Part shown: positions 2,960-35,150 of the stretch, in pieces
Position numbering within the stretch: position 1 is the stretch's first letter
How the letters are laid out: the number at the start of each line of letters is the position of its first letter
Origin: Dicyema japonicum
Lineage: Eukaryota > Animalia > Dicyemida
Direction: 5' to 3'
DNA length: 64,000 bases
Assembly: GCA_011109175.1 (NCBI GenBank)
Contig: RDEW01000011.1
Span: forward strand, 1,078,091 to 1,142,090
Made by a program: the position numbers and the translations under genes
Notes under the pieces: generated by a model
What the model saw: only the letters and a program-made list of their open reading frames with translations
What the model was told of the DNA's origin: nothing
The model's database searches: none

Positions 2960-4250
2960 GTTAAAATTTCACTCTTGCAGCATTCAAAATAATTATCCGA
3001 ACCAATTTTTTCCTACCTTCTCGATCGTAGCAGAGTTTCCTCAGCTCTTCCAGATCGTCCCCACTTCTTAGACGTTTGTTCACGAGCTTTAGATCTCTGT
3101 TAAGTGTTTCTGATAATGTAATTCCCCATAGTTTACGAAAACACGGCCCCTTTCTCATAAAATAGTTCTTCATTGCTATGTTTGCTGGAGCACCTAATTC
3201 CATACGCAAGTTTGCTTGACAAAGGCTTCACACAGTTTTAAACAAAATGATGTGCAGGATCTTAGTTTGCCAATCCACTCTTTCTTTAAACTGTTCATCG
3301 TTACCCAAAAGAGGGCAATATCTTGACTGTCTCCAAGTAAGAAGCCAAGTTTGTTTATTTTTCGCCATGTTTCACTTGATCTGTTTCCATTCTCCTGATT
3401 TCCACGATGTCAGTTTTTGCGATGTTCATTCCAAAAAACCATCGGTTGAGCTCAGCAGGGGCCAGCTCGGGGAGTCGGATTAGGGCCGATTTGTCTTCTG
3501 ACACAAAGTTGACGTCGTCCGCATAGGCAATTTCGACGATGTTGCCATCATAGAGCTTCCGAAGATCTCGTAATGCCGCTTCCAGATATATAACAAATAG
3601 CAGGGAGTACTAACATTGCACTTAAATTAACGGGATAACGTCTTACCGATTTACACTCTGAGCTTCATGTTAGATAGCAACACTCTGATCATATTGACAG
3701 AATCAGGGTCCAAGAATTGTTCCAGTATCCTAAGAAGTATACCACAGTGGACCGTGTCAAAGGCCCTAGAGAGGTCTATTCCCAGGACTGTTGTTGCACT
3801 TTCAAATCTCTGGTTGATAGCGCAGAGCCACTTGTGGCTCCATAATACATCTGCAGTGGATCTTCTTGCCCTGAATCCAATGTGACTAGAGGATAGACAG
3901 TTGTCCACTTGTTCTCTGATTCAGTTCAACGTAACTAATGCCAGAAGTTTCCGTAAGGTGTTTAGCAGGATTATTGGACGTAAGTTTTCAACAGGCCCAG
4001 CATGCTTGTTACGTTTTTGTATTGGTATTAATAGTCCGGATCCAAGAGCTAGGTATTCTTTTTTTATAAACATAGAGTTTAGTAGTTTTGCCAACTTGTC
4101 TGTTAGTACAGATGGCCCATATTTGACAAAATCTGAATTCTTAAGTTTGACCATTGCATTTGATATTTCGCCAGGTGTGATAGCTCTATCAAGTTGGGTG
4201 GCGTATCCACAAGTATGATCAGAGATTTCTCCGCTGACAGTTAATATATC
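2960..4250 (-). mobile_element. Degenerate RTE-clade LINE (RT and C-terminus)
   Basis: NLRPIILLNTLRK, GFRARRSTADVLWSH, GIDLSRAFDTV and AYADDV motifs, broken by frameshifts and deletions. Confidence 0.85.
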
Positions 4251-4750: not shown

Positions 4751-6204
4751 TACAGTGCGACCCCGAATTGGAGAAACCCTATTTTTTGGAGAAATATTTT
4801 CGCCATCCCTGTTAAATACAATGATTTTTACCCCCTACTGGGGAAAATTTTTATATTATCAAAAACGATTAATTAATGTGACCGGTTGAATACGAGCCCA
4901 GGTTGAATACGAGCCGTTAAAGGCGTTAAAGCCGTTAGAAATCAATATTTTTTAATAAAAAATAAATCAATAAATTAATTAATTCACATCTTTATAATGA
5001 TTAGTAATTTTAATAATTTAAATTTATCACAAATTTTTATTTTCTTAACGGTTTACTTCAGATAGAATAGAAATAGATTTTTGCTCACGCTAGTTTTTGT
5101 TTTTTGTTATGAAGGTTGTCCATTTCACTCTGCTACAAAAGCAAGAAATAATTACTTATCTGAGATAGTAAAATTTACCTCAAAAATGAACATCATGGTC
5201 GTGATAGACTTCTTTTTTTTCTAAAGAATCTAGTCTATGGATTTTGCAGAGATGAAGTTATGGTTGTTCACAATGTCTGGCAAGACGGCTTATGAACACT
5301 CGACTAACTATAACACCTATCAGAGCATATACAGTGAGAGAAAGCTGTTCAGCATTCAACAACTCTGCACGCTCCTTTTAAATTGATGTTCGGAGCTTTT
5401 GCCATGAAACAATAAATAATCATTACTCAGAAGATGAAATGAATGAAATATTCAGGCAAATTGATTCATGGAATGAAGAAACACAAACTGAAGCAACTGA
5501 ATATCTTGCATGGTTTTGGTCATCATGTGAAACTTCGAGAACAAAAGCAATTTTAAATTCAAACAATGCTGAAAGAAAAATGTTAACACAAGGAATGTGG
5601 AAGAATAATTGTGGAATAGTTAGTTAAGAGAATTGTGGGAGAAAAGAATAACCTGAAGAAAAATACGGCACAAGCGGAATTTTAATTAAATAAATTACAT
5701 TTTTGGTTCTTCAAAAGTGCTATTAATAATAATAATAATGTGGAAGAATGATATTTCCATTTTTAACATCGGCGTTCGAGTTGTCAGGAGGGTGAATCTT
5801 GATAATAATAAAAAAACACGAAAAAGTGGCTTAAACGAACACATTGATACATTCATATATCATGTTAAAGGAGTATCTGCCACAGGAATGATTGATCTAG
5901 AAGGAGAAGATGGTAGTGTGATTCAAGAAAATAGCAGAGACTTAGCAAAGTTAGAATAATTTTACAATATAAATTTTTTAATTTTTTCTAATAAAATCAG
6001 TTATTATTATTTCGATCATTTTATAATATCATTAGAGTTAGGATTCTTAAGCTTTCAGCTTTGCATTAGAGTTAGGAAAACTTAGGGATATATATTAGAG
6101 TTATACAACGAACAGAACGTAAGAAAATTAACAATTTGACGAGACACAACTGAAACACACAATTTGAATTGAAATAGCAAAAATCATCAATGTAACTAAA
6201 AAGT

Positions 6205-6242
6205 CTGGGGTGTCTAACTTATTTCCCTTTGAGGGCCGCATT
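6205..6242 (+). mobile_element. Possible hAT (Charlie-like) terminal sequence
   Basis: ctggggtgtctaacttatttccctttgagggccgcat resembles CAGGGGTGTCxAAC...GAGGGCC ends. No partner end found. Confidence 0.35.
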
Positions 6243-6607
6243 GACAAGCTGATAGTCGGCTCGATATACTAGTTGTAGAGATGCCCCAATGCAGAGTTGT
6301 AAGATCTTCTGTAATGTCCAAGGAAGACTTTTACGAAGTTTCTTTGAGAAGAAGATAGCATGTTATTTAATGCGTCCCGAAAATCATCAGTCATTTAGTT
6401 ACGTTTTTGTGTTTAATCGAAATTTTAATTCAATAAAATTTATATTATCAAAAATTAAAATGATGTAAATTATATTTTGTTAATGTTGTGGATAATTTGA
6501 CTAATTTATAGCAAACTTTGTTTTGAAAACTTCATTTTTTCAAAAATTTAAGGTTCAATCATTAAACCGGACTTGTTGAACTTTCTTTCAATTAATTAGT
6601 TTTGGAC

Positions 6608-7504
6608 TTGTTGAACTTTCTTTCAAAAAGAAAGTCATATATACGTGTTGGAAATTTAATTTCAAAGAAAATTGAATTGCGAAGAGGAGTTCCACAGGGT
6701 TCAATTCTCAGTCCGTTACTCTTCAATTGCGTAATGAGAGATTTGCCGAAAACAGAGAGCGTAAATAGTCAAATGATTATTTATGCTGATGACATTCTTG
6801 TGCTTGATTCAAGCATGAATAAACAAATTTCTTGGAAAAGGGTGGAATCCCATATTACTAAGATTGGAAAGTGGTGCCAAGACAATGGGTTGACTCTATC
6901 GAAGGAAAAAACAACAGTCACTTGGATTGCAAGTAAAAGAAAAAATATTAATCAATGTGTGAATACTGGGGATATAAAAATCTCTGAAACATTGAAGTAT
7001 CTCGGATTGTTGATAGATCGAAGAGGATCTTTCAAGGAACATATTAAAACACGAAGAAAGAAAGCTACAGGAATGTTGAAATCTTTAATTCGATTTCATT
7101 TGGAGCCTGAAACTTTTCTTTTTGTGTATTCGGCGTGTGTTGAACCATTCTTGATATATGGTTATCAAGGATGGTTTAGAACAAAAGAAAGTGATGTCTT
7201 TGTCAAAAAATTGGAAAAGTCCAGAAGATTTGCGATTAAATTGGCATATGGACTGGACTTAAAATCTAATATCGAAGAGGATTACGACCTGAAAGTCAGA
7301 AAGATAGAAAAATTATTACATCACTTATGGAAAATGTGATGTAATTTTTGGGGTCCAAACGAAGTAGAGACATGTGGTGTCTCATAAAATGACCCTACAC
7401 GATGAATACAAACCCACTTAATTAGTTTTGGTTCAGGTTTTGGTTTCTTTACAGTAATTAGTTTTGGGGTTTGTTAGAAAATAAAATTTGTCTTGTCTTG
7501 TCTT
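6608..7504 (+). mobile_element. 5'-truncated non-LTR retrotransposon, family A (Jockey/I/R1-type RT C-half)
   Basis: GVPQGSILSPLLF, YADD and KYLG motifs in an open frame to 7339. AATAAA at 7480 followed by a (TGTCT)3 tail. Confidence 0.9.
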
Positions 7505-7516
7505 GGACGATTAATT

Positions 7517-8599
7517 GGGTGCACTCCGAATATTCAATACTCTATGTAGTATGGATTCTCTCAAAGTAGCTCGAATATCGCGCCGACACACAGGAGAATT
7601 TCTCCTGAACTTTAAAACTACAAGTGATTTGGAAGGTTTCCAGAATCAACTAGAAGAAAGAAAACCTTTTGGAGTTAATGGACATTCATTACAAAAAGCT
7701 ACGCCGAGACCCTCAGTAGTAATGCTTAAAGGTCTTCCGACGTGGATTGAAACCAATGAGTTGGAAGAATACCTTGGAACGATATTGGGAGAAAAATTTA
7801 CGGTTGAAAGATTTGAAAAGCAGGGCATCAGACTATCTGTTGCCAAACTTACAATTTCGGACAGAAATGAGGCTGAATCTCTTGTAAGATTTGGACTGAT
7901 AATTGGATATCTGAAGATAAAAGTTGAATGGTTCAATAAACCAGAGATCCAATGTTTTCGTTGTCAACAGTTTGGTCATATTGCTCGTTTTTGCAAGAAT
8001 GTTGAAAGATGCCTTGTTTGTTCTGGGCCACATAGAAGATCGCAGTGTCCTGTTACAAACAATAATAAGTCGTGTGTGAATTGTGGTTCATCCAGCCACT
8101 TTGCCAATTATGGAGGATGCCCCAAGGCTGTTGAAGCTAACATAGCGAAGAAAAACAAAATTGACCAAAAAAGGAAAGAATCGAATAGAAAATTATCTCT
8201 AAAACGAGAAAATGCCTATAATGGAGAAAGTGAAGTTTCCAATATTGGAACGAATAAGAAATTAAGAATGTATGAGCAGACTGGCTGGAATATGACATAT
8301 AATAAGAAACCTTTTATAAAAGAAACAGTAGAAGCTTCAACACAGACAAGCAGTTTTGATGAGAGTGACCAGGCGGAACACCTGTTAGAAAAGTGACTTT
8401 TGGAGTTGCTACACAGACTATCGAGACTCACTCAAACATCTTGTCTGAAAATGAAGAAGTAGTAGCTTCCAACTCGATTCTTGACAAGTTGGAGAGAAGC
8501 ATTAAAGATATGACTAGAACAAAAAAGGATTCTAAATTTTTACTAGATTTGGTGGCGCTCTTAAGAAGAGAGGGCAGTCACCAAAAAAACCAGAAGTAG
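7517..8599 (+). CDS. LINE ORF1, gag-like nucleic-acid-binding protein with three CCHC-type knuckles (5' truncated; one frameshift at ~8393)
   Basis: CFRCQQFGHIARFC, CLVCSGPHRRSQC, CVNCGSSSHFANYGGCP. Confidence 0.88.
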
Positions 8600-11157
8600 T
8601 CAGGATAACCCTGATTAATGCCCGTTCTCTTCGGAAACGGGCCTCAGTGCTGGTTGCTCTAGCCAGCACGATCCAGATGGATGTTCTAATTATAAACGAA
8701 ACTAAATTGAAGAAAAGACCATTTAAAATTGATGGATACGACTCATTAGATATTTTTTGGAAGACTGGTTCTTGTGCTGGAACAGGAACTTCAATTTACT
8801 ACAAAACTTCTTTAAATACAAGACTACCCACGATCAATGAAGAAAATCTTTGTGAACTAGCAAGCATTCAACTACAAACAACCATGGGATGGATAACTAT
8901 CGGAGGAATCTATTCTAAAAAACTAGAGAGTATCCATGGATTGTTGACAAATTTATGGAAAACAATGAATATCCAATCCTTGTTGGGGACATGAACGCTA
9001 AACATACTGACTATGGTTGTGTAGCAACCAATCAAGATGGAAAATGCCTTGTAAAATGGATGAAGTCTGGAGAGTTAAAGATTTTAACTTCAGTAGAAAT
9101 TAATCACTTTGCACCAAGGAGTGGGGACAAGCTCGGAGTTTTTGTGATGCCTCAGAATCTAAGCAAAATTTGTGAGCACCCATATGTGGAGCAAGATATT
9201 GGAAGCGACCATCTTCCACAAACTTTGGAAATAAGGACGGGGCCTATATCTGCTGAAAGAACTTTTGTTGGCTACAACCTTAATAATGTCAACTGGGTTG
9301 ATTTCGATTATTTTATACGGGTGAAACTGGGAAATGTCTGTGATCTATTGATCTTAGACTCCTCAGATATTGATTACTTGGATGACAAAATTAGGACTTT
9401 GATATTGTGTTATTTGGACGAATATGGAAGTAAAAAATTCCGTATGCCGCATGGATGCTCATCAATGAGCTTAAAAGAAGATTCCCTCCATCGAGAGAAA
9501 AAATCACTTGAAAGTAAACTGAAAAGATGTTGGAACATTCCCGACTCGGAAAAGCTAAAGGTTCAGATCAGCTTAGTGAAAAATGAATTAATGGAAATAT
9601 TCAAACGAAAACAGGAAAATAAATGGAGAAGAGAATGCTCAAAGATCAATCACAAGAATGCAGACTTTTGGAAAGTATTCGCGAGATTGAAATCCTCTGA
9701 TGACAAATGTGATGAAATACACCTAAAATCATCCAATGGTTGTTGTATTTCAAAGGGGGAAATCCCAGAAATTCTACGGCAACAGTTAGCAAAAATTCAA
9801 GAAGTAGATCCTGCTTCCATTATTCCATGTGAATTTCGAAGCAATAATCATCACTATGATAGGATGGTGTCAATGAAGGGTCCTATGTGTACTCCTATTT
9901 CCCCTGAAGAAGTAAAAATTGCGATTTGTAGCTGCAAGAACAAAACCCCTGGATGGGATTTTATCCCAATGAAAATATTCAAGAATGCAAATGCTATGTT
10001 AATTGATGCATTAACCATGCTTTATAATGCCTCGTGGAAACTTGCTCACGTTCCATCGACCTGGAAAAAGTCGATTGTTCGGATGATTGGAAAGAAAGGA
10101 AAATCAAGATCTAATCCAGAAAATTATAGACCAATTAGTCTTATTTGTTCAACTTCAAAAATTATGGAGAAAATTGTCTTCAATAGATTATCAAAAGTGG
10201 TTGAGGAAAACAATTTTCTTGCAAACAATCAGTGGGGGTTCCGTAAAAATAGAGGAACTGAAGACTGCATCCGAGAACTTAGGAAGTCAATTCAAGAATC
10301 TATAAGTAAGAAAGAATACCTTACTGCAACGTGTTTGGACATATCCAAGGCTTTTGACAGTGTCTGGCATGAGGACTTTTCGAGACATTGTCAAACCGAA
10401 CATTGGAAAGTCGGCGCTCATGTGGATTAGAGACTTCCTTATGGGAAGGGAGTCTTATATTCGTGTGGGAAATATGCTCTCTAAAAAGATAAAACTAAGT
10501 AGAGGTGTTCCACAAGGTTCAATTTTGAGTCCCCTCCTCTTCAACTGTATAATGAGCGAGGTGCCAAAACCGGAACACATCAATACCAAAATGATAATTT
10601 ATGCAGACGACATTCTAATTTTGGACACTAGTATAAATAAATCAATATCATGGAAAAGAACATTAGCTCATATGTCGAAAATCGAAGATTGGTGTCGGAA
10701 TAATGGATTGACATTATCAAGAGAAAAAAGTTCTGTAACCTGGATAGCGAGAAATAGGAGGAATCAATATGTTGATACAGGGAATGTTAAGTTCTCGGAA
10801 AACCTGATATACCTTGGAGTATGCATTAACAAAAAAGGATCGTTTAAAGAGCACATCAAAATACGAAGAGAGAAAGCTACGGGAATGCTCAAGTCCCTAC
10901 TCCGCTTTCATTTGTCTCCAGATACTTTTATGTTTGTCTACAAAACGTGTATTGAACCTTTCCTAATATATGGATATCAAGGTTGGTTTAAAACAGAGGA
11001 GGAATCAGTTCTACTAACTAAATTAGAAAAGACAAGAAGGTATGCAATTAAACTCGCACATGGATTGGATTTAGCATCTGAAATTGATGACTAATACGAA
11101 AGAAAAACGAGAAGAATCGCTGATTTATTACATTGCTTGTGGAAACTCGCATTGTAA
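8581..11157 (+). pseudogene. LINE ORF2, APE endonuclease plus reverse transcriptase (frameshifts at ~8960 and ~10380, stop at 11092)
   Basis: ITLINARSL, INETK, GDMNAKH, GSDH, YRPISL, QWGFR, LDISKAFDSV, GVPQGSILSP, YADD. Confidence 0.9.
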
Positions 11158-11340
11158 TTGGGGCTTTTTACGGAGAAGAGACATACGGTGTCTCATGAGA
11201 GTGCCCCGATATAGACGACCCCAAATCTTGGCTTTCCTCTTTAGTTAATGGCTCTTACCTTGTTTAGTTAGTTGGGGTTTTGCGAATAAATCATGTTATC
11301 ATGTTATGTTATCATGGACGATTAATTTTCTTAGAATAAG

Positions 11341-11383
11341 GGGTTTGTTAGAAAATAAAATTTGTCCTGTCTTGTCTTGTCTT
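11341..11383 (+). mobile_element. 43-bp 3' stub of family A LINE with a 25-27-bp TSD
   Basis: Matches 7467-7504. Flanked by ggacgattaattttcttagaataag at 11316-11340 and 11384-11408. Confidence 0.88.
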
Positions 11384-11391
11384 GGACGATT

Positions 11392-12268
11392 AATTTTCTT
11401 AGAATAAGGGTGGTGCCACTGGTGAATAAGTGGTGCCACTGGTGCTAAAAGACGAAGAAGTATACTACGAGTTTGAGAAACATATTTCAGGCCTAATGGA
11501 GATGTGGTGAAAGATCCCTTGTCTGTTCTGATTCACATAGAAGATCGCAGTGTCCGGTTACGAACAATAATAAGTCCTTTGAATTGTGTTCATCCATCGA
11601 CTTTGCCAATTATGGAAGATGTCCCAAGGCTGTTAAAGCTAACATTGCGAAGAAAAACAAAATTGACCAAAAAAGGAAAGAATCGAATGGAAAATTATTT
11701 CTAAAACGAGAAAATGCCCATAATGGAGAAAGTGAAGTTTCCAAAATTGGAACGAATAAGAAATTAAAGTCAGAGTTTAGAATGTATGGGCAGACTGGCT
11801 GGAATACGACATATAATAAGAAACCTTCTAAAAAAGAAACAGTAGAAGCTTCAACACAGAGAAGAGAGTGGTGCTCTTAAGAAGAGAGGGCAGCCACCGA
11901 AAAAACCAGAAGTAGTCAGGATAACCCTGGTTAATGCCCGTTCTCTTTGGAAACGGGCCTCAGTGCTGGTTGTTATAGCCAGCACGATCCAGATGGAAGT
12001 TCTAATTATAAACGAAACTAAATTGAAGCACATGGATTTAGCATCTGAAATTGATGACGAATACGAAAGAAAAACGAGAAGAATTGGTATTTATTACATT
12101 GCTTGTGGAAACTCGCATTGTAATTGGGGCTTTTTACGGAGAAGAGACATACGGTGTCTCATGAGAGTGCCCCGATATAGACGACCCCAAATCTTGGCTT
12201 TCCTCTTTAGTTAATGGCTCTTACCTTGTTTAGTTAGTTGGGGTTTTGCGAATAAATCATGTTATCTG
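11392..12268 (+). mobile_element. Internally deleted family B LINE copy with 8-bp TSD ggacgatt
   Basis: Pieces match ORF1 (~8010-8350), the ORF1/2 junction (~8550-8710) and the 3' end (~11057-11300). ggacgatt at 11384 and 12269. Confidence 0.85.
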
Positions 12269-12379
12269 GGACGATTTCCATTTTGTTTGATTGGCTTTTT
12301 AAATCGGTACATTGAGGATCGATATTTAACGGCTCGTATTTAACCGTATCTCATTCTCAACCGGTCACATTAATTACCC

Positions 12380-14179: not shown

Positions 14180-14252
14180 AGACCCCGACGGGATTCGAAC
14201 CCGCGATCAACTGGATAGAAGCCAGACGCCTTATCCTCTAGGCCACGGAGCC
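14180..14252 (-). tRNA. trnR-TCT: tRNA-Arg (anticodon TCT), intronless
   Basis: GGCTCCG-TG-GCCT..AGGC-G-TCTGG-CTTCTAT-CCAGT-TGATC-GCGGG-TTCGAAT-CCCGT-CGGGGTC-T cloverleaf, 73 nt. T6 Pol III terminator just downstream. Confidence 0.93.
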
Positions 14253-33509: not shown

Positions 33510-35150
33510 GTCGAAAAACCGAATCATTACATTACTCGCACTACGGGGGAGACATGCTTGGGGTGTTCCTGGTGTCACCATCACTCTACAGTTATGTAGA
33601 AAAGCCGATGATCATGTGGGACATCGGGAGTGATCATATACACCAAGAGATGTTATTGAACCTAGCTCCAGACTCAATGGACTCTGTGTTTACAGGTTAC
33701 GACCTAACAAGAATAAACTGGGAACACTACAGGAGATACATATCGAGAATCCTCAAACACTAAAAGATTAAAGATTAATCCCTAAGTGATATCGACATCA
33801 TAGACAATGAACTCTCTATCATGATGGATACATACTTAATTCTTTACGCAAGAAGGAGATCCTCGAGTACTAATCATGGAAAGAGCATCAGTCTTTCGAT
33901 TTCCACATTATCTTTGATCAATGAAAGGAATTGCCTGAGAAGTAAACTCAGAAGACTGGATAGACCGGATTGCACTACCGAACAATTGAAGATAACCAAG
34001 AAAGCCATTGAAGAAAGAATAAGACTATCTCAAGAACAATGTTTGAGGGTAGAGGCAAGCAAACTAAACACCAAAGACCCCTCGTTCTGGAAGTTCTACA
34101 AAAGAATAACTAGCCAGAAAAGGAATGACATAAAAATCTCCTTGACCAAGCCAGAAGGTGGACTGTGTTCTATGGAAGAAGCCCCAGATATTTTTATGAA
34201 ACAACTGGATCGTATTCAGGGGTCAACCCGATGGAGCTTATTCCGAGGGAGACGTTAGATTCTTCACGTGAAATTTTAACCTACTGTTTGGACGATCTTA
34301 AAGATACTGATATGAAAATAACTACGGAGGAAGTCATGACTGCAATCATGAGATGCAAGGCTAACGCTCCTGGACTTGACCATCTAAGTATGAGATTGTT
34401 CAAGGAAGCTCCAGAAGCTCTATTTCCCATACTGAAGAATTTATTCAATGCAAGCATTTATCATGGTCATGTCCCTAAACGCTGGAAATCTTCCATTGTC
34501 AGAATGATACTGAAACCAGAAAAATCGAGGAGGGACCCTCTCAGTTATAGGCCAATAAGCCTCATCTGTTCGATCTCCAAGATTATCGAACGAATTATCT
34601 TCAGGAGGCTTAACGACCACATAGAAGAGTGGTTTCCTTCTCGCAGAACAATGGGGCTTCAGACTTGGAAAATCATGCACGGACTGCATCTACCCGATGC
34701 ATTTAATTGTATTGAGAGGTCTGGAATTTAAAAGACTAGTCAACCTGGTATGTTTGGATCTGTCCAAGGGTTTCGATAGTGTGTGCCATGAAGTACTCCT
34801 ATCAAGTCTAGCAGGTGCTCAGATCCATAAAAAACTACTCATCTGGATAAGGGATTTCCTAACAGAACGGATTTTCCAAGTACGCGTTGGAGCACATATT
34901 TCGAAAGACATCATACTGAAGAGAGGAGTTCCTCAGGGTTCCGTCCTGAGCCCTTGTACATCTTCATGAGGATCATCCTACCAGAACTGCTATATGGATG
35001 CGAAGTATGGTTTTTCTCTTGCCAAAGAGAAAGAATAATGTTTCTCATGGTAAAAACCAGAAGGTCGGCAATAAAGTTGGCTTTAGGAAAAAGGCTCTGG
35101 GATGTTCTCAGCACTGAAGAAGACATGATTCTAACTCCTGTTAAAAGCAT
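33510..35150 (+). mobile_element. Degenerate Jockey/I-type LINE (third family related to A/B) inside the dead SH2D5 copy
   Basis: DIGSDH, YRPISLICSISK, LDLSKGFDSV, GVPQGSVLSP. Confidence 0.85.

Follow-up and report, generated by a model that had tools for sequence, protein, structure and literature searches.

The 64,000-nucleotide stretch of the Dicyema japonicum genome analysed here (contig RDEW01000011.1; hereafter the window, whose own positions serve as coordinates) contains at 6569–12276 a head-to-tail stack of long interspersed nuclear elements (LINEs), lodged within a DNA transposon with terminal inverted repeats (TIRs) that we term T1. The LINE 3' junctions in the stack are followed by GGAC(GATT). 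We consider it probable, at roughly 70%, that the stack arose by repeated target-primed reverse transcription (TPRT) at one preferred nick of T1, carried out by a dicyemid LINE clade with shared insertion hot spots. The genome searched for related copies (G000) comprised 67,542,437 bases in 377 contigs; individual genomic loci bear L numbers.

The + strand has the motif GGACGATT at 7505, 11316, 11384 and 12269 and, as a chance match, at a single further place in the 64 kb. A LINE tail precedes each of these four sites, either (TGTCT)n, which marks family A, or a (TGTTATC)-like repeat, which marks family B. The shorter ggac is present at 6569 and 6604. Exact direct repeats flank the inserts: 23 nt at 6569–6591 and 6604–6626, enclosing a 12-nt filler; 12 nt at 7505–7516 and 11316–11327; 27 nt at 11316–11342 and 11384–11410; and 8 nt at 11384–11391 and 12269–12276. 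The duplications specific to individual inserts measure 4, 12, 27 and 8 nt. An initial annotation, made from the window sequence alone, had described the recurrent GGAC(GATT), the insert-specific flanking repeats, the two kinds of tail and an internally deleted B copy, and all were found again at those positions.

Each window duplication is a prefix of the sequence that then lay to the right of the nick, in agreement with the right-to-left order proposed in that annotation, by which the copy retaining the upstream flank was hit again. From oldest to youngest, the insertions would be an internally deleted B copy, Bdel (8-nt duplication), a 41-nt A stub (27 nt), a near-full-length B (12 nt) and a 5'-truncated A (4 nt). 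Every event would have involved a bottom-strand nick just before GGAC and a top-strand nick 4–27 nt to the right. The left duplication copy would then be reused because it keeps the transposon's upstream context, and the right copy, now behind a LINE tail, would be spared. The 27-nt duplication holds 19 nt of the leader of this particular Bdel, and since that leader differs from those of other Bdel copies examined, the duplication most likely arose at this locus. A model of homology-guided insertion of read-through RNA was rejected for the window on the same observation, that the duplication carries a Bdel leader unseen in the other copies examined.

The components of the stack all lie on the + strand. 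Bdel (11392–12268; repeats D2–D8) is a non-autonomous B derivative that retains B positions ∼496–846, 1048–1208 and 3552–3803 behind its own variable 5' leader; its left duplication copy is the 8-nt ggacgatt at 11384–11391. The A stub (11343–11383) consists of the end of the 3' untranslated region (UTR) and the tail, with 98% identity to 7466–7505 (D12), and its left duplication copy of 25–27 nt occupies 11316–11342 (D13). Element B (7517–11315) has open reading frame (ORF) 1, a broken ORF2 and a (TGTTATC)-like tail; its left duplication copy (7505–7516) is composed of 8 nt of T1 and 4 nt of the leader of the older insert. Element A (6604–7504), the youngest insert, encodes the C-terminal half of the reverse transcriptase (RT) in an open frame at 6602–7339, followed by the 3' UTR and a (TGTCT)n tail that runs up to GGACGATT at 7505. 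It is 99% identical to other A copies from 6614 onward, and its duplication is the 4-nt ggac. To the left of the stack T1 occupies 4877–6568, from a terminus TGTGACC... with the left TIR reaching ∼4921 (inverted repeat I1) to the LINE nick; to the right it resumes at 12269–12369, from the nick to a terminus ...GGTCACA that includes the right TIR.

The 5' junction of element A (6569–6603; repeats D18, D14 and D19) is complex. Its first part, 6569–6591, is the first copy of the 23-nt repeat and consists of diverged A coding sequence with ggac at its start; its second, 6592–6603, is the 12-nt filler, for which an exact match exists within the A 3' UTR. The filler is not a normal 3' stub, because it lacks a family tail, and the 3'-UTR stretch that it matches has a TTTCTTT microhomology in common with the duplicated coding segment (D19). 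Judging from these matches, its more likely origin is a template switch at the 5' junction of A, rather than a fifth insertion. We therefore count four secure insertions of the five originally annotated.

The T1 site was followed through 34 loci with matches to its flanks; the genome-wide counts given here and below are approximate and refer to the matches listed. In eight T1 copies the site is empty, the left and right parts being joined directly as ...cattaatacg^GGACGATTGCC. At least 17 distinct T1 copies are filled by LINE sequence exactly at the same nick, with LINE proteins encoded in the inserts. The tails found there include those of A, several lengths of B, the (TTTGA)n of a family C, and three more kinds, D, E and F. 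At the eight 5' junctions that could be read (two of them from near-identical loci and two from inserts without a right end read), the left flank leads into a 4–11 nt GGACG... copy and then a LINE 5' end truncated differently in each. The differing tails, truncation points and duplication lengths mean that the filled T1 copies are independent insertions, by at least six related LINE families. The initial annotation had noted two diverged families at one nick, which holds in extended form, and had proposed a search for empty sites within copies of the TIR element, where such sites do exist. Its reconstructed target was not the native site: the window copy is a variant, and a genome search for the reconstructed empty site with up to three mismatches returned nothing because of that divergence, so that the empty sites were found through their flanks instead.

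Single inserts at the T1 nick are common (L053, L062, L064). Stacks occur at other T1 copies too (L057, L058, L059, L060, L066), and comparable stacks were seen at no fewer than six other loci in all. In L058 the site was still used with only 4–5 nt of native downstream sequence left, so the determinant would lie mainly upstream of the nick. The deletion structure of Bdel recurs in many genomic copies with differing 5' leaders and junctions, which indicates independent insertions and an element that retrotransposes in its own right.

These genomic copies bear on two ways in which the array could mislead. One is that GGACGATT(AATT) belongs to the LINE termini, in keeping with the presence of GGACGATTAATT before two B-type 5' ends in the window; the other is that dispersed repeats were wrongly joined into the array, in an assembly of which gaps make up 4.1% (PMC6736024). 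The first is refuted. Empty T1 copies have GGACGATTGCC contiguous with both flanks, and other near-full-length B copies have ∼140 nt more 5' UTR, absent from element B in the window (the longer form is seen in L072 and L060), and different sequence upstream; GGACGATT is thus target sequence, as the initial annotation had supposed. Against misassembly stand the comparable stacks elsewhere and the absence of any N in the assembled sequence from 4870 to 12376. Taken together, the two have a negligible share of the probability.

We also weighed whether the stack could stem from one or two events, through RT jumping between LINE RNAs, or whether transposition or gene conversion multiplied copies of the transposon that already bore LINEs. 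LINE tails in this genome often adjoin the 5' ends of other LINEs or of U2 small nuclear RNA (snRNA) with little or no visible duplication, and the filler at 6592–6603 resembles a template switch. Against these explanations, every window junction carries a duplication equal to the prefix of the sequence then to its right, including the 19-nt Bdel leader; single inserts are common at the same nick; and filled T1 copies vary in the family inserted, in the length of tail and duplication, and in the point of truncation. These explanations are largely contradicted here, and we regard them as very improbable.

As judged from their encoded domains, the inserts are non-long-terminal-repeat retrotransposons (LINEs) of the apurinic/apyrimidinic endonuclease (APE) type with a knuckle-bearing ORF1, in line with the initial annotation. 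The footprints of TPRT are present: 5' truncation, target-site duplications and 3' tails. ORF1 of element B, from the ATG at 7551 to 8396, has a region like an RNA recognition motif and three CCHC knuckles; ORF2 (APE and RT) is split in the window into at least three frames. Pfam profiles RVT_1 and Exo_endo_phos_2 matched the window B copy above their cutoffs, and zf-CCHC fell just below its own (E 0.0012; 19.2 bits against a cutoff of 20.8). Family A has an intact ORF2 of 825 aa in L053, with APE (Exo_endo_phos_2, E 2.9e-10) and RT (RVT_1, E 6.2e-39) and with neither RNase H nor a C-terminal Cys-rich motif; its ORF1, in L058, has 301 aa. A sequence search of the PDB found the RT similar to the structures of LINE-1 ORF2p and R2, and gave no meaningful match for the APE domain alone; the ESM Atlas returned generic LINE clusters only, of no help for clade placement.

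In the RT region B is 67–69% identical to A in amino acid sequence, and C–F are 33–47% identical to A. In a quick maximum-likelihood tree, A–F fell into one group against 45 external proteins, with a support of 99 in the Shimodaira–Hasegawa-like approximate likelihood-ratio test (SH-aLRT); the tree is unrooted, uses pieces joined with X at frame breaks, and leaves out other dicyemid LINEs. The six families thus appear to be one LINE clade sharing the hot spots, a grouping relative to those 45 unnamed proteins. The closest external protein to the family A ORF2, 75% identical, is labelled Octopus sinensis; other external matches are 21–36% identical. Dicyemids inhabit octopus kidneys. Throughout the clade ORF2, with APE and RT, is short, ORF1 bears three CCHC knuckles, tails are microsatellite-like, and 5' UTRs are short: 34 nt in the window B copy, ∼175 nt in more complete B copies and ∼100 nt in A. 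Such short 5' UTRs would fit dependence on read-through transcription.

Two side observations concern these families. The sole other trace of them in the window is a short stretch at 34464–34606, 76% identical to the family C LINE. Elsewhere in the genome, B and family C tails stand directly before position 1–2 of U2 snRNA or U2-like sequence, in L026 (G000:C334:1255074–1255334; Rfam U2 score 114 bits), at G000:C343:33381–33456 and at C355:50418–50493. These joints could be insertions at the U2 start, chimeric retrocopies made by template jumping, or a short interspersed nuclear element headed by U2.

The initial annotation had proposed conserved specificity for the T1 target sequence, and this was not borne out. 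There are 120 3' ends of B in the genome and ∼62 of A; GGACG lies directly 3' of ∼9 of ∼43 distinct A ends and ∼9 of 41 sampled B ends (21–22%), and most copies are elsewhere. The other recurrent flanks, common to A and B, fall in four further TIR families, T2–T5. In T2 the nick lies 200 bp from the right end (∼18 copies filled, 11–13 empty), in T3 103 bp (∼21 filled, 16 empty) and in T4 223 bp (∼19 filled, 11 empty); T5, whose ends are unmapped, is a looser hot spot with 3 of 14 copies filled. The mapped sites of T1–T4 are thus 100–223 bp from the right ends. In T1 and T4 the nick position is constant to within one nucleotide; in T3 and T5 the spread is a few nucleotides. Some 10 tail types were found at the T1–T5 sites, which account for ∼58% of 3' ends in A, ∼39% in B and ∼19% in C. 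With ∼135 T sites in 67.5 Mb, ∼0.001 of B's 120 copies would be expected there by chance, and at least 30 were observed. Stacking recurs as well: T2 locus L078 reads B, a 12-nt duplication, A, a 15-nt duplication and a full-length C.

At T1, and likewise at T2–T4, independent insertions at the same nucleotide coexist with empty sites. Nearly all copies at one sequence, the strict target specificity of R1, R2 or Tx1L, is not the pattern in this genome. The LINEs strongly prefer the T sites without being confined to them.

Several observations count against repeated TPRT at one preferred T1 nick by a clade with shared hot spots. The stack is known as assembled, and the Logan short contigs of public runs cannot span it; they do contain empty-site joints and tail/T1 joints from other copies. 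In L072 (352–420; G000:C315) a later 29-nt B 3' stub missed the usual T1 nick by 9 nt, inserting to its right at the 5' end of the resident full-length B; this placement is read from a flanking 8-nt duplication, which repeats that LINE's first bases. Many LINE copies are elsewhere, with ordinary 8–13 nt duplications at unrelated sequences, as in Bdel copies; family C uses the T sites for less than a fifth of its ends; and T3 nicks are spread over ∼5 nt. Finally, no shared motif, k-mer or hairpin was found among the T1–T4 sites by k-mer comparison, pairwise alignment and folding of single-strand DNA (z-scores near 0). This lack of common sequence is unexpected if a single endonuclease reads sequence, the more so because families with RT segments only 33–47% identical use all the sites. 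A loose T-run...GGTTYC motif 9–18 nt upstream of the nick in T1–T3, absent from T4 and T5, is a post hoc lead only.

What places the nick is a separate matter. Under repeated TPRT at a preferred T1 nick the LINE machinery itself would do so, with ORF2 or the ribonucleoprotein reading mainly the upstream transposon side. The payoff would be a harmless landing place, possibly with read-through transcription. The hot spots could instead be made by the target, a transposon or host factor in the right subterminal region nicking, distorting or tethering, and LINEs of the clade priming opportunistically. The use of at least five sites without common sequence or fold by at least six diverged families is more easily explained by a target-borne cue; the mapped sites of T1–T4 all occupy a corresponding region of transposons that are alike in structure and bounded by TGT...ACA; and the same LINEs choose targets loosely elsewhere. 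On the other side, we know of no internal-site nicking by Ginger-type integrases, and reuse tracks the upstream flank to within one or a few nucleotides, as is typical of endonuclease-directed TPRT. We hold target-made hot spots to be possible but doubtful. Known APE LINEs derive their specificity from their own endonuclease, which carries it in Tx1L, R1Bm and TRAS1 (PMC1919474), and by analogy with these three, recognition by the LINE's own proteins is favoured.

It is also conceivable, though unlikely, that site choice is not read from sequence at all, and that some higher-order cue, common to Ginger2-type transposons, directs the whole clade into their right subterminal region. Candidates for such a cue would be a complex of transposase or host factor, or a feature of DNA shape. 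If this were true, it would amount to tethered LINE-to-DNA-transposon targeting that builds self-renewing landing pads.

The target elements have a character of their own. Around the stack, 52-nt TIRs at 4870–4921 and 12325–12376 are 85% complementary, and T1 proper extends from 4877 to 12369 (TGTGACC...GGTCACA); the initial annotation was right as to the TIRs, and its limits of 4870–12376 and nick ∼110 bp from the end are revised, these termini giving a distance of 101 bp. Both parts of T1 are multi-copy, with 40 genome matches to the right part (39 besides the window copy) and 39 to the left. The left part has no ORF that reaches 100 aa (five are listed, of 80 aa at most), nor has T3; these short ORFs lay outside the Pfam scan. 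By their coding content the T1 and T3 copies examined are non-autonomous. Rfam gave no hit in three T1-family copies (L040, L041, L045), each holding only the last 170–490 bp of the left part together with the right part, whole or incomplete, so no hidden tRNA, snRNA or rRNA is the target; the initial annotation had not recognised the target as any of these. A tRNA gene (Rfam 59.8 bits) does lie on the – strand of the window at 14180–14252, 1.8 kb to the right of the transposon.

The termini are TGTGA in T1 and TGTCG in T2, T3 and T4, the TIRs measure 52–55 nt, and the flanks are AT-rich. T3 and T4 copies show 5-bp duplications (TATTA, CATTA, TTAAT), and the window T1 has no clean 5-bp duplication at its flanks. 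Ginger2/TDD transposons have TGTNR termini, TIRs of ∼50–180 bp and 4–5 bp duplications at AT-rich targets (PMC2836005). In these structural hallmarks (termini, TIRs and duplications) T1–T4 look Ginger2/TDD-like.

Further peculiarities of these transposons were noted in passing. T4 has, in L088 (2021–3340; G000:C279), an internal tandem array of ∼95-bp repeats just left of the LINE hot spot. L094 (G000:C24:898400–907100) has three T3 right ends spaced ∼4.0 kb apart and resembles a tandem duplication of a T3-containing unit. In the right flanks of L050, L060, L065 and L084, several T1 and T4 copies adjoin one other repeat, starting CCCCGGATACACCGAG, after an AT-rich junction, which suggests nesting among DNA transposon families. 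In L061 (G000:C356:737500–742000) the T1 left part stops 9 nt past the nick and gives way to unrelated DNA, in which a CTNNBL1-like gene (Pfam CTNNBL) is represented by two exons.

The published D. japonicum assembly has 67.5 Mb in 377 scaffolds with 49% repeats, and of the transposons in it only LINE ORF2 copies are mentioned (PMC6736024). Dicyemid transposon biology has been essentially undescribed so far, and in this very reduced animal genome around half of the sequence may be split among transposons that nest in each other rather than in genes. The LINE clade described here reuses several nucleotide-precise sites without evident common sequence. The sites are usable after each insertion, and so the landing pads grow into stacks. 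Target-specific APE LINEs are natural models for programmable, break-free DNA insertion; the dicyemid clade raises the question whether the first nick is positioned by the endonuclease, by another domain of ORF2 or ORF1, or by a transposon-borne factor.

Among known systems, Ty3 and the Dictyostelium TRE/DRE elements show factor-tethered targeting at genes transcribed by RNA polymerase III. They resemble the dicyemid LINEs in that several families return to precise or nearly precise positions that have no target sequence in common. The targets here are DNA transposons instead of polymerase III genes, and a tether would be hypothetical.

Both the Tx1 and the R1 clade include target-specific APE LINEs, among whose listed target classes are transposons (PMC4640811). 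An R1-clade element recognises ∼10 bp surrounding a single nick site and inserts almost nowhere else (PMC1919474). With that clade (R1, TRAS, SART, Waldo) the dicyemid LINEs have in common a bottom-strand nick that is APE-directed, putatively so in the dicyemids, a variable top-strand nick, a CCHC ORF1 and a repeated target. They differ from it in that the downstream half of the site is replaceable beyond 4–5 nt, that the site is reused into stacks, and that specificity is partial. A zinc-finger-like, Cys-rich ORF2 C-terminus is a feature of the Tx1 and R1 clades (PMC1919474); no such motif was found in the family A ORF2, which continues for ∼110 aa past the RT motifs and has only one Cys there.

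The closest precedent is Tx1L, which inserts at a defined site of the DNA transposon Tx1D in Xenopus laevis (Christensen et al. 2000, as cited in PMC6719617 and PMC1919474). Compared by features rather than phylogeny, the dicyemid LINEs have a short ORF2 (825 aa) without the C-terminal Cys-rich motif, and short tandem-repeat tails, unlike Tx1L. The dicyemid system also differs in its breadth, with at least six families at no fewer than five unrelated-looking sites in five transposon families and a large dispersed share, and in that the site is renewed after each insertion and specificity is partial. In both, an APE/RT LINE with a knuckle-bearing ORF1 enters in a single orientation at a defined position of a multi-copy TIR transposon, and the transposon would serve as a safe landing place.

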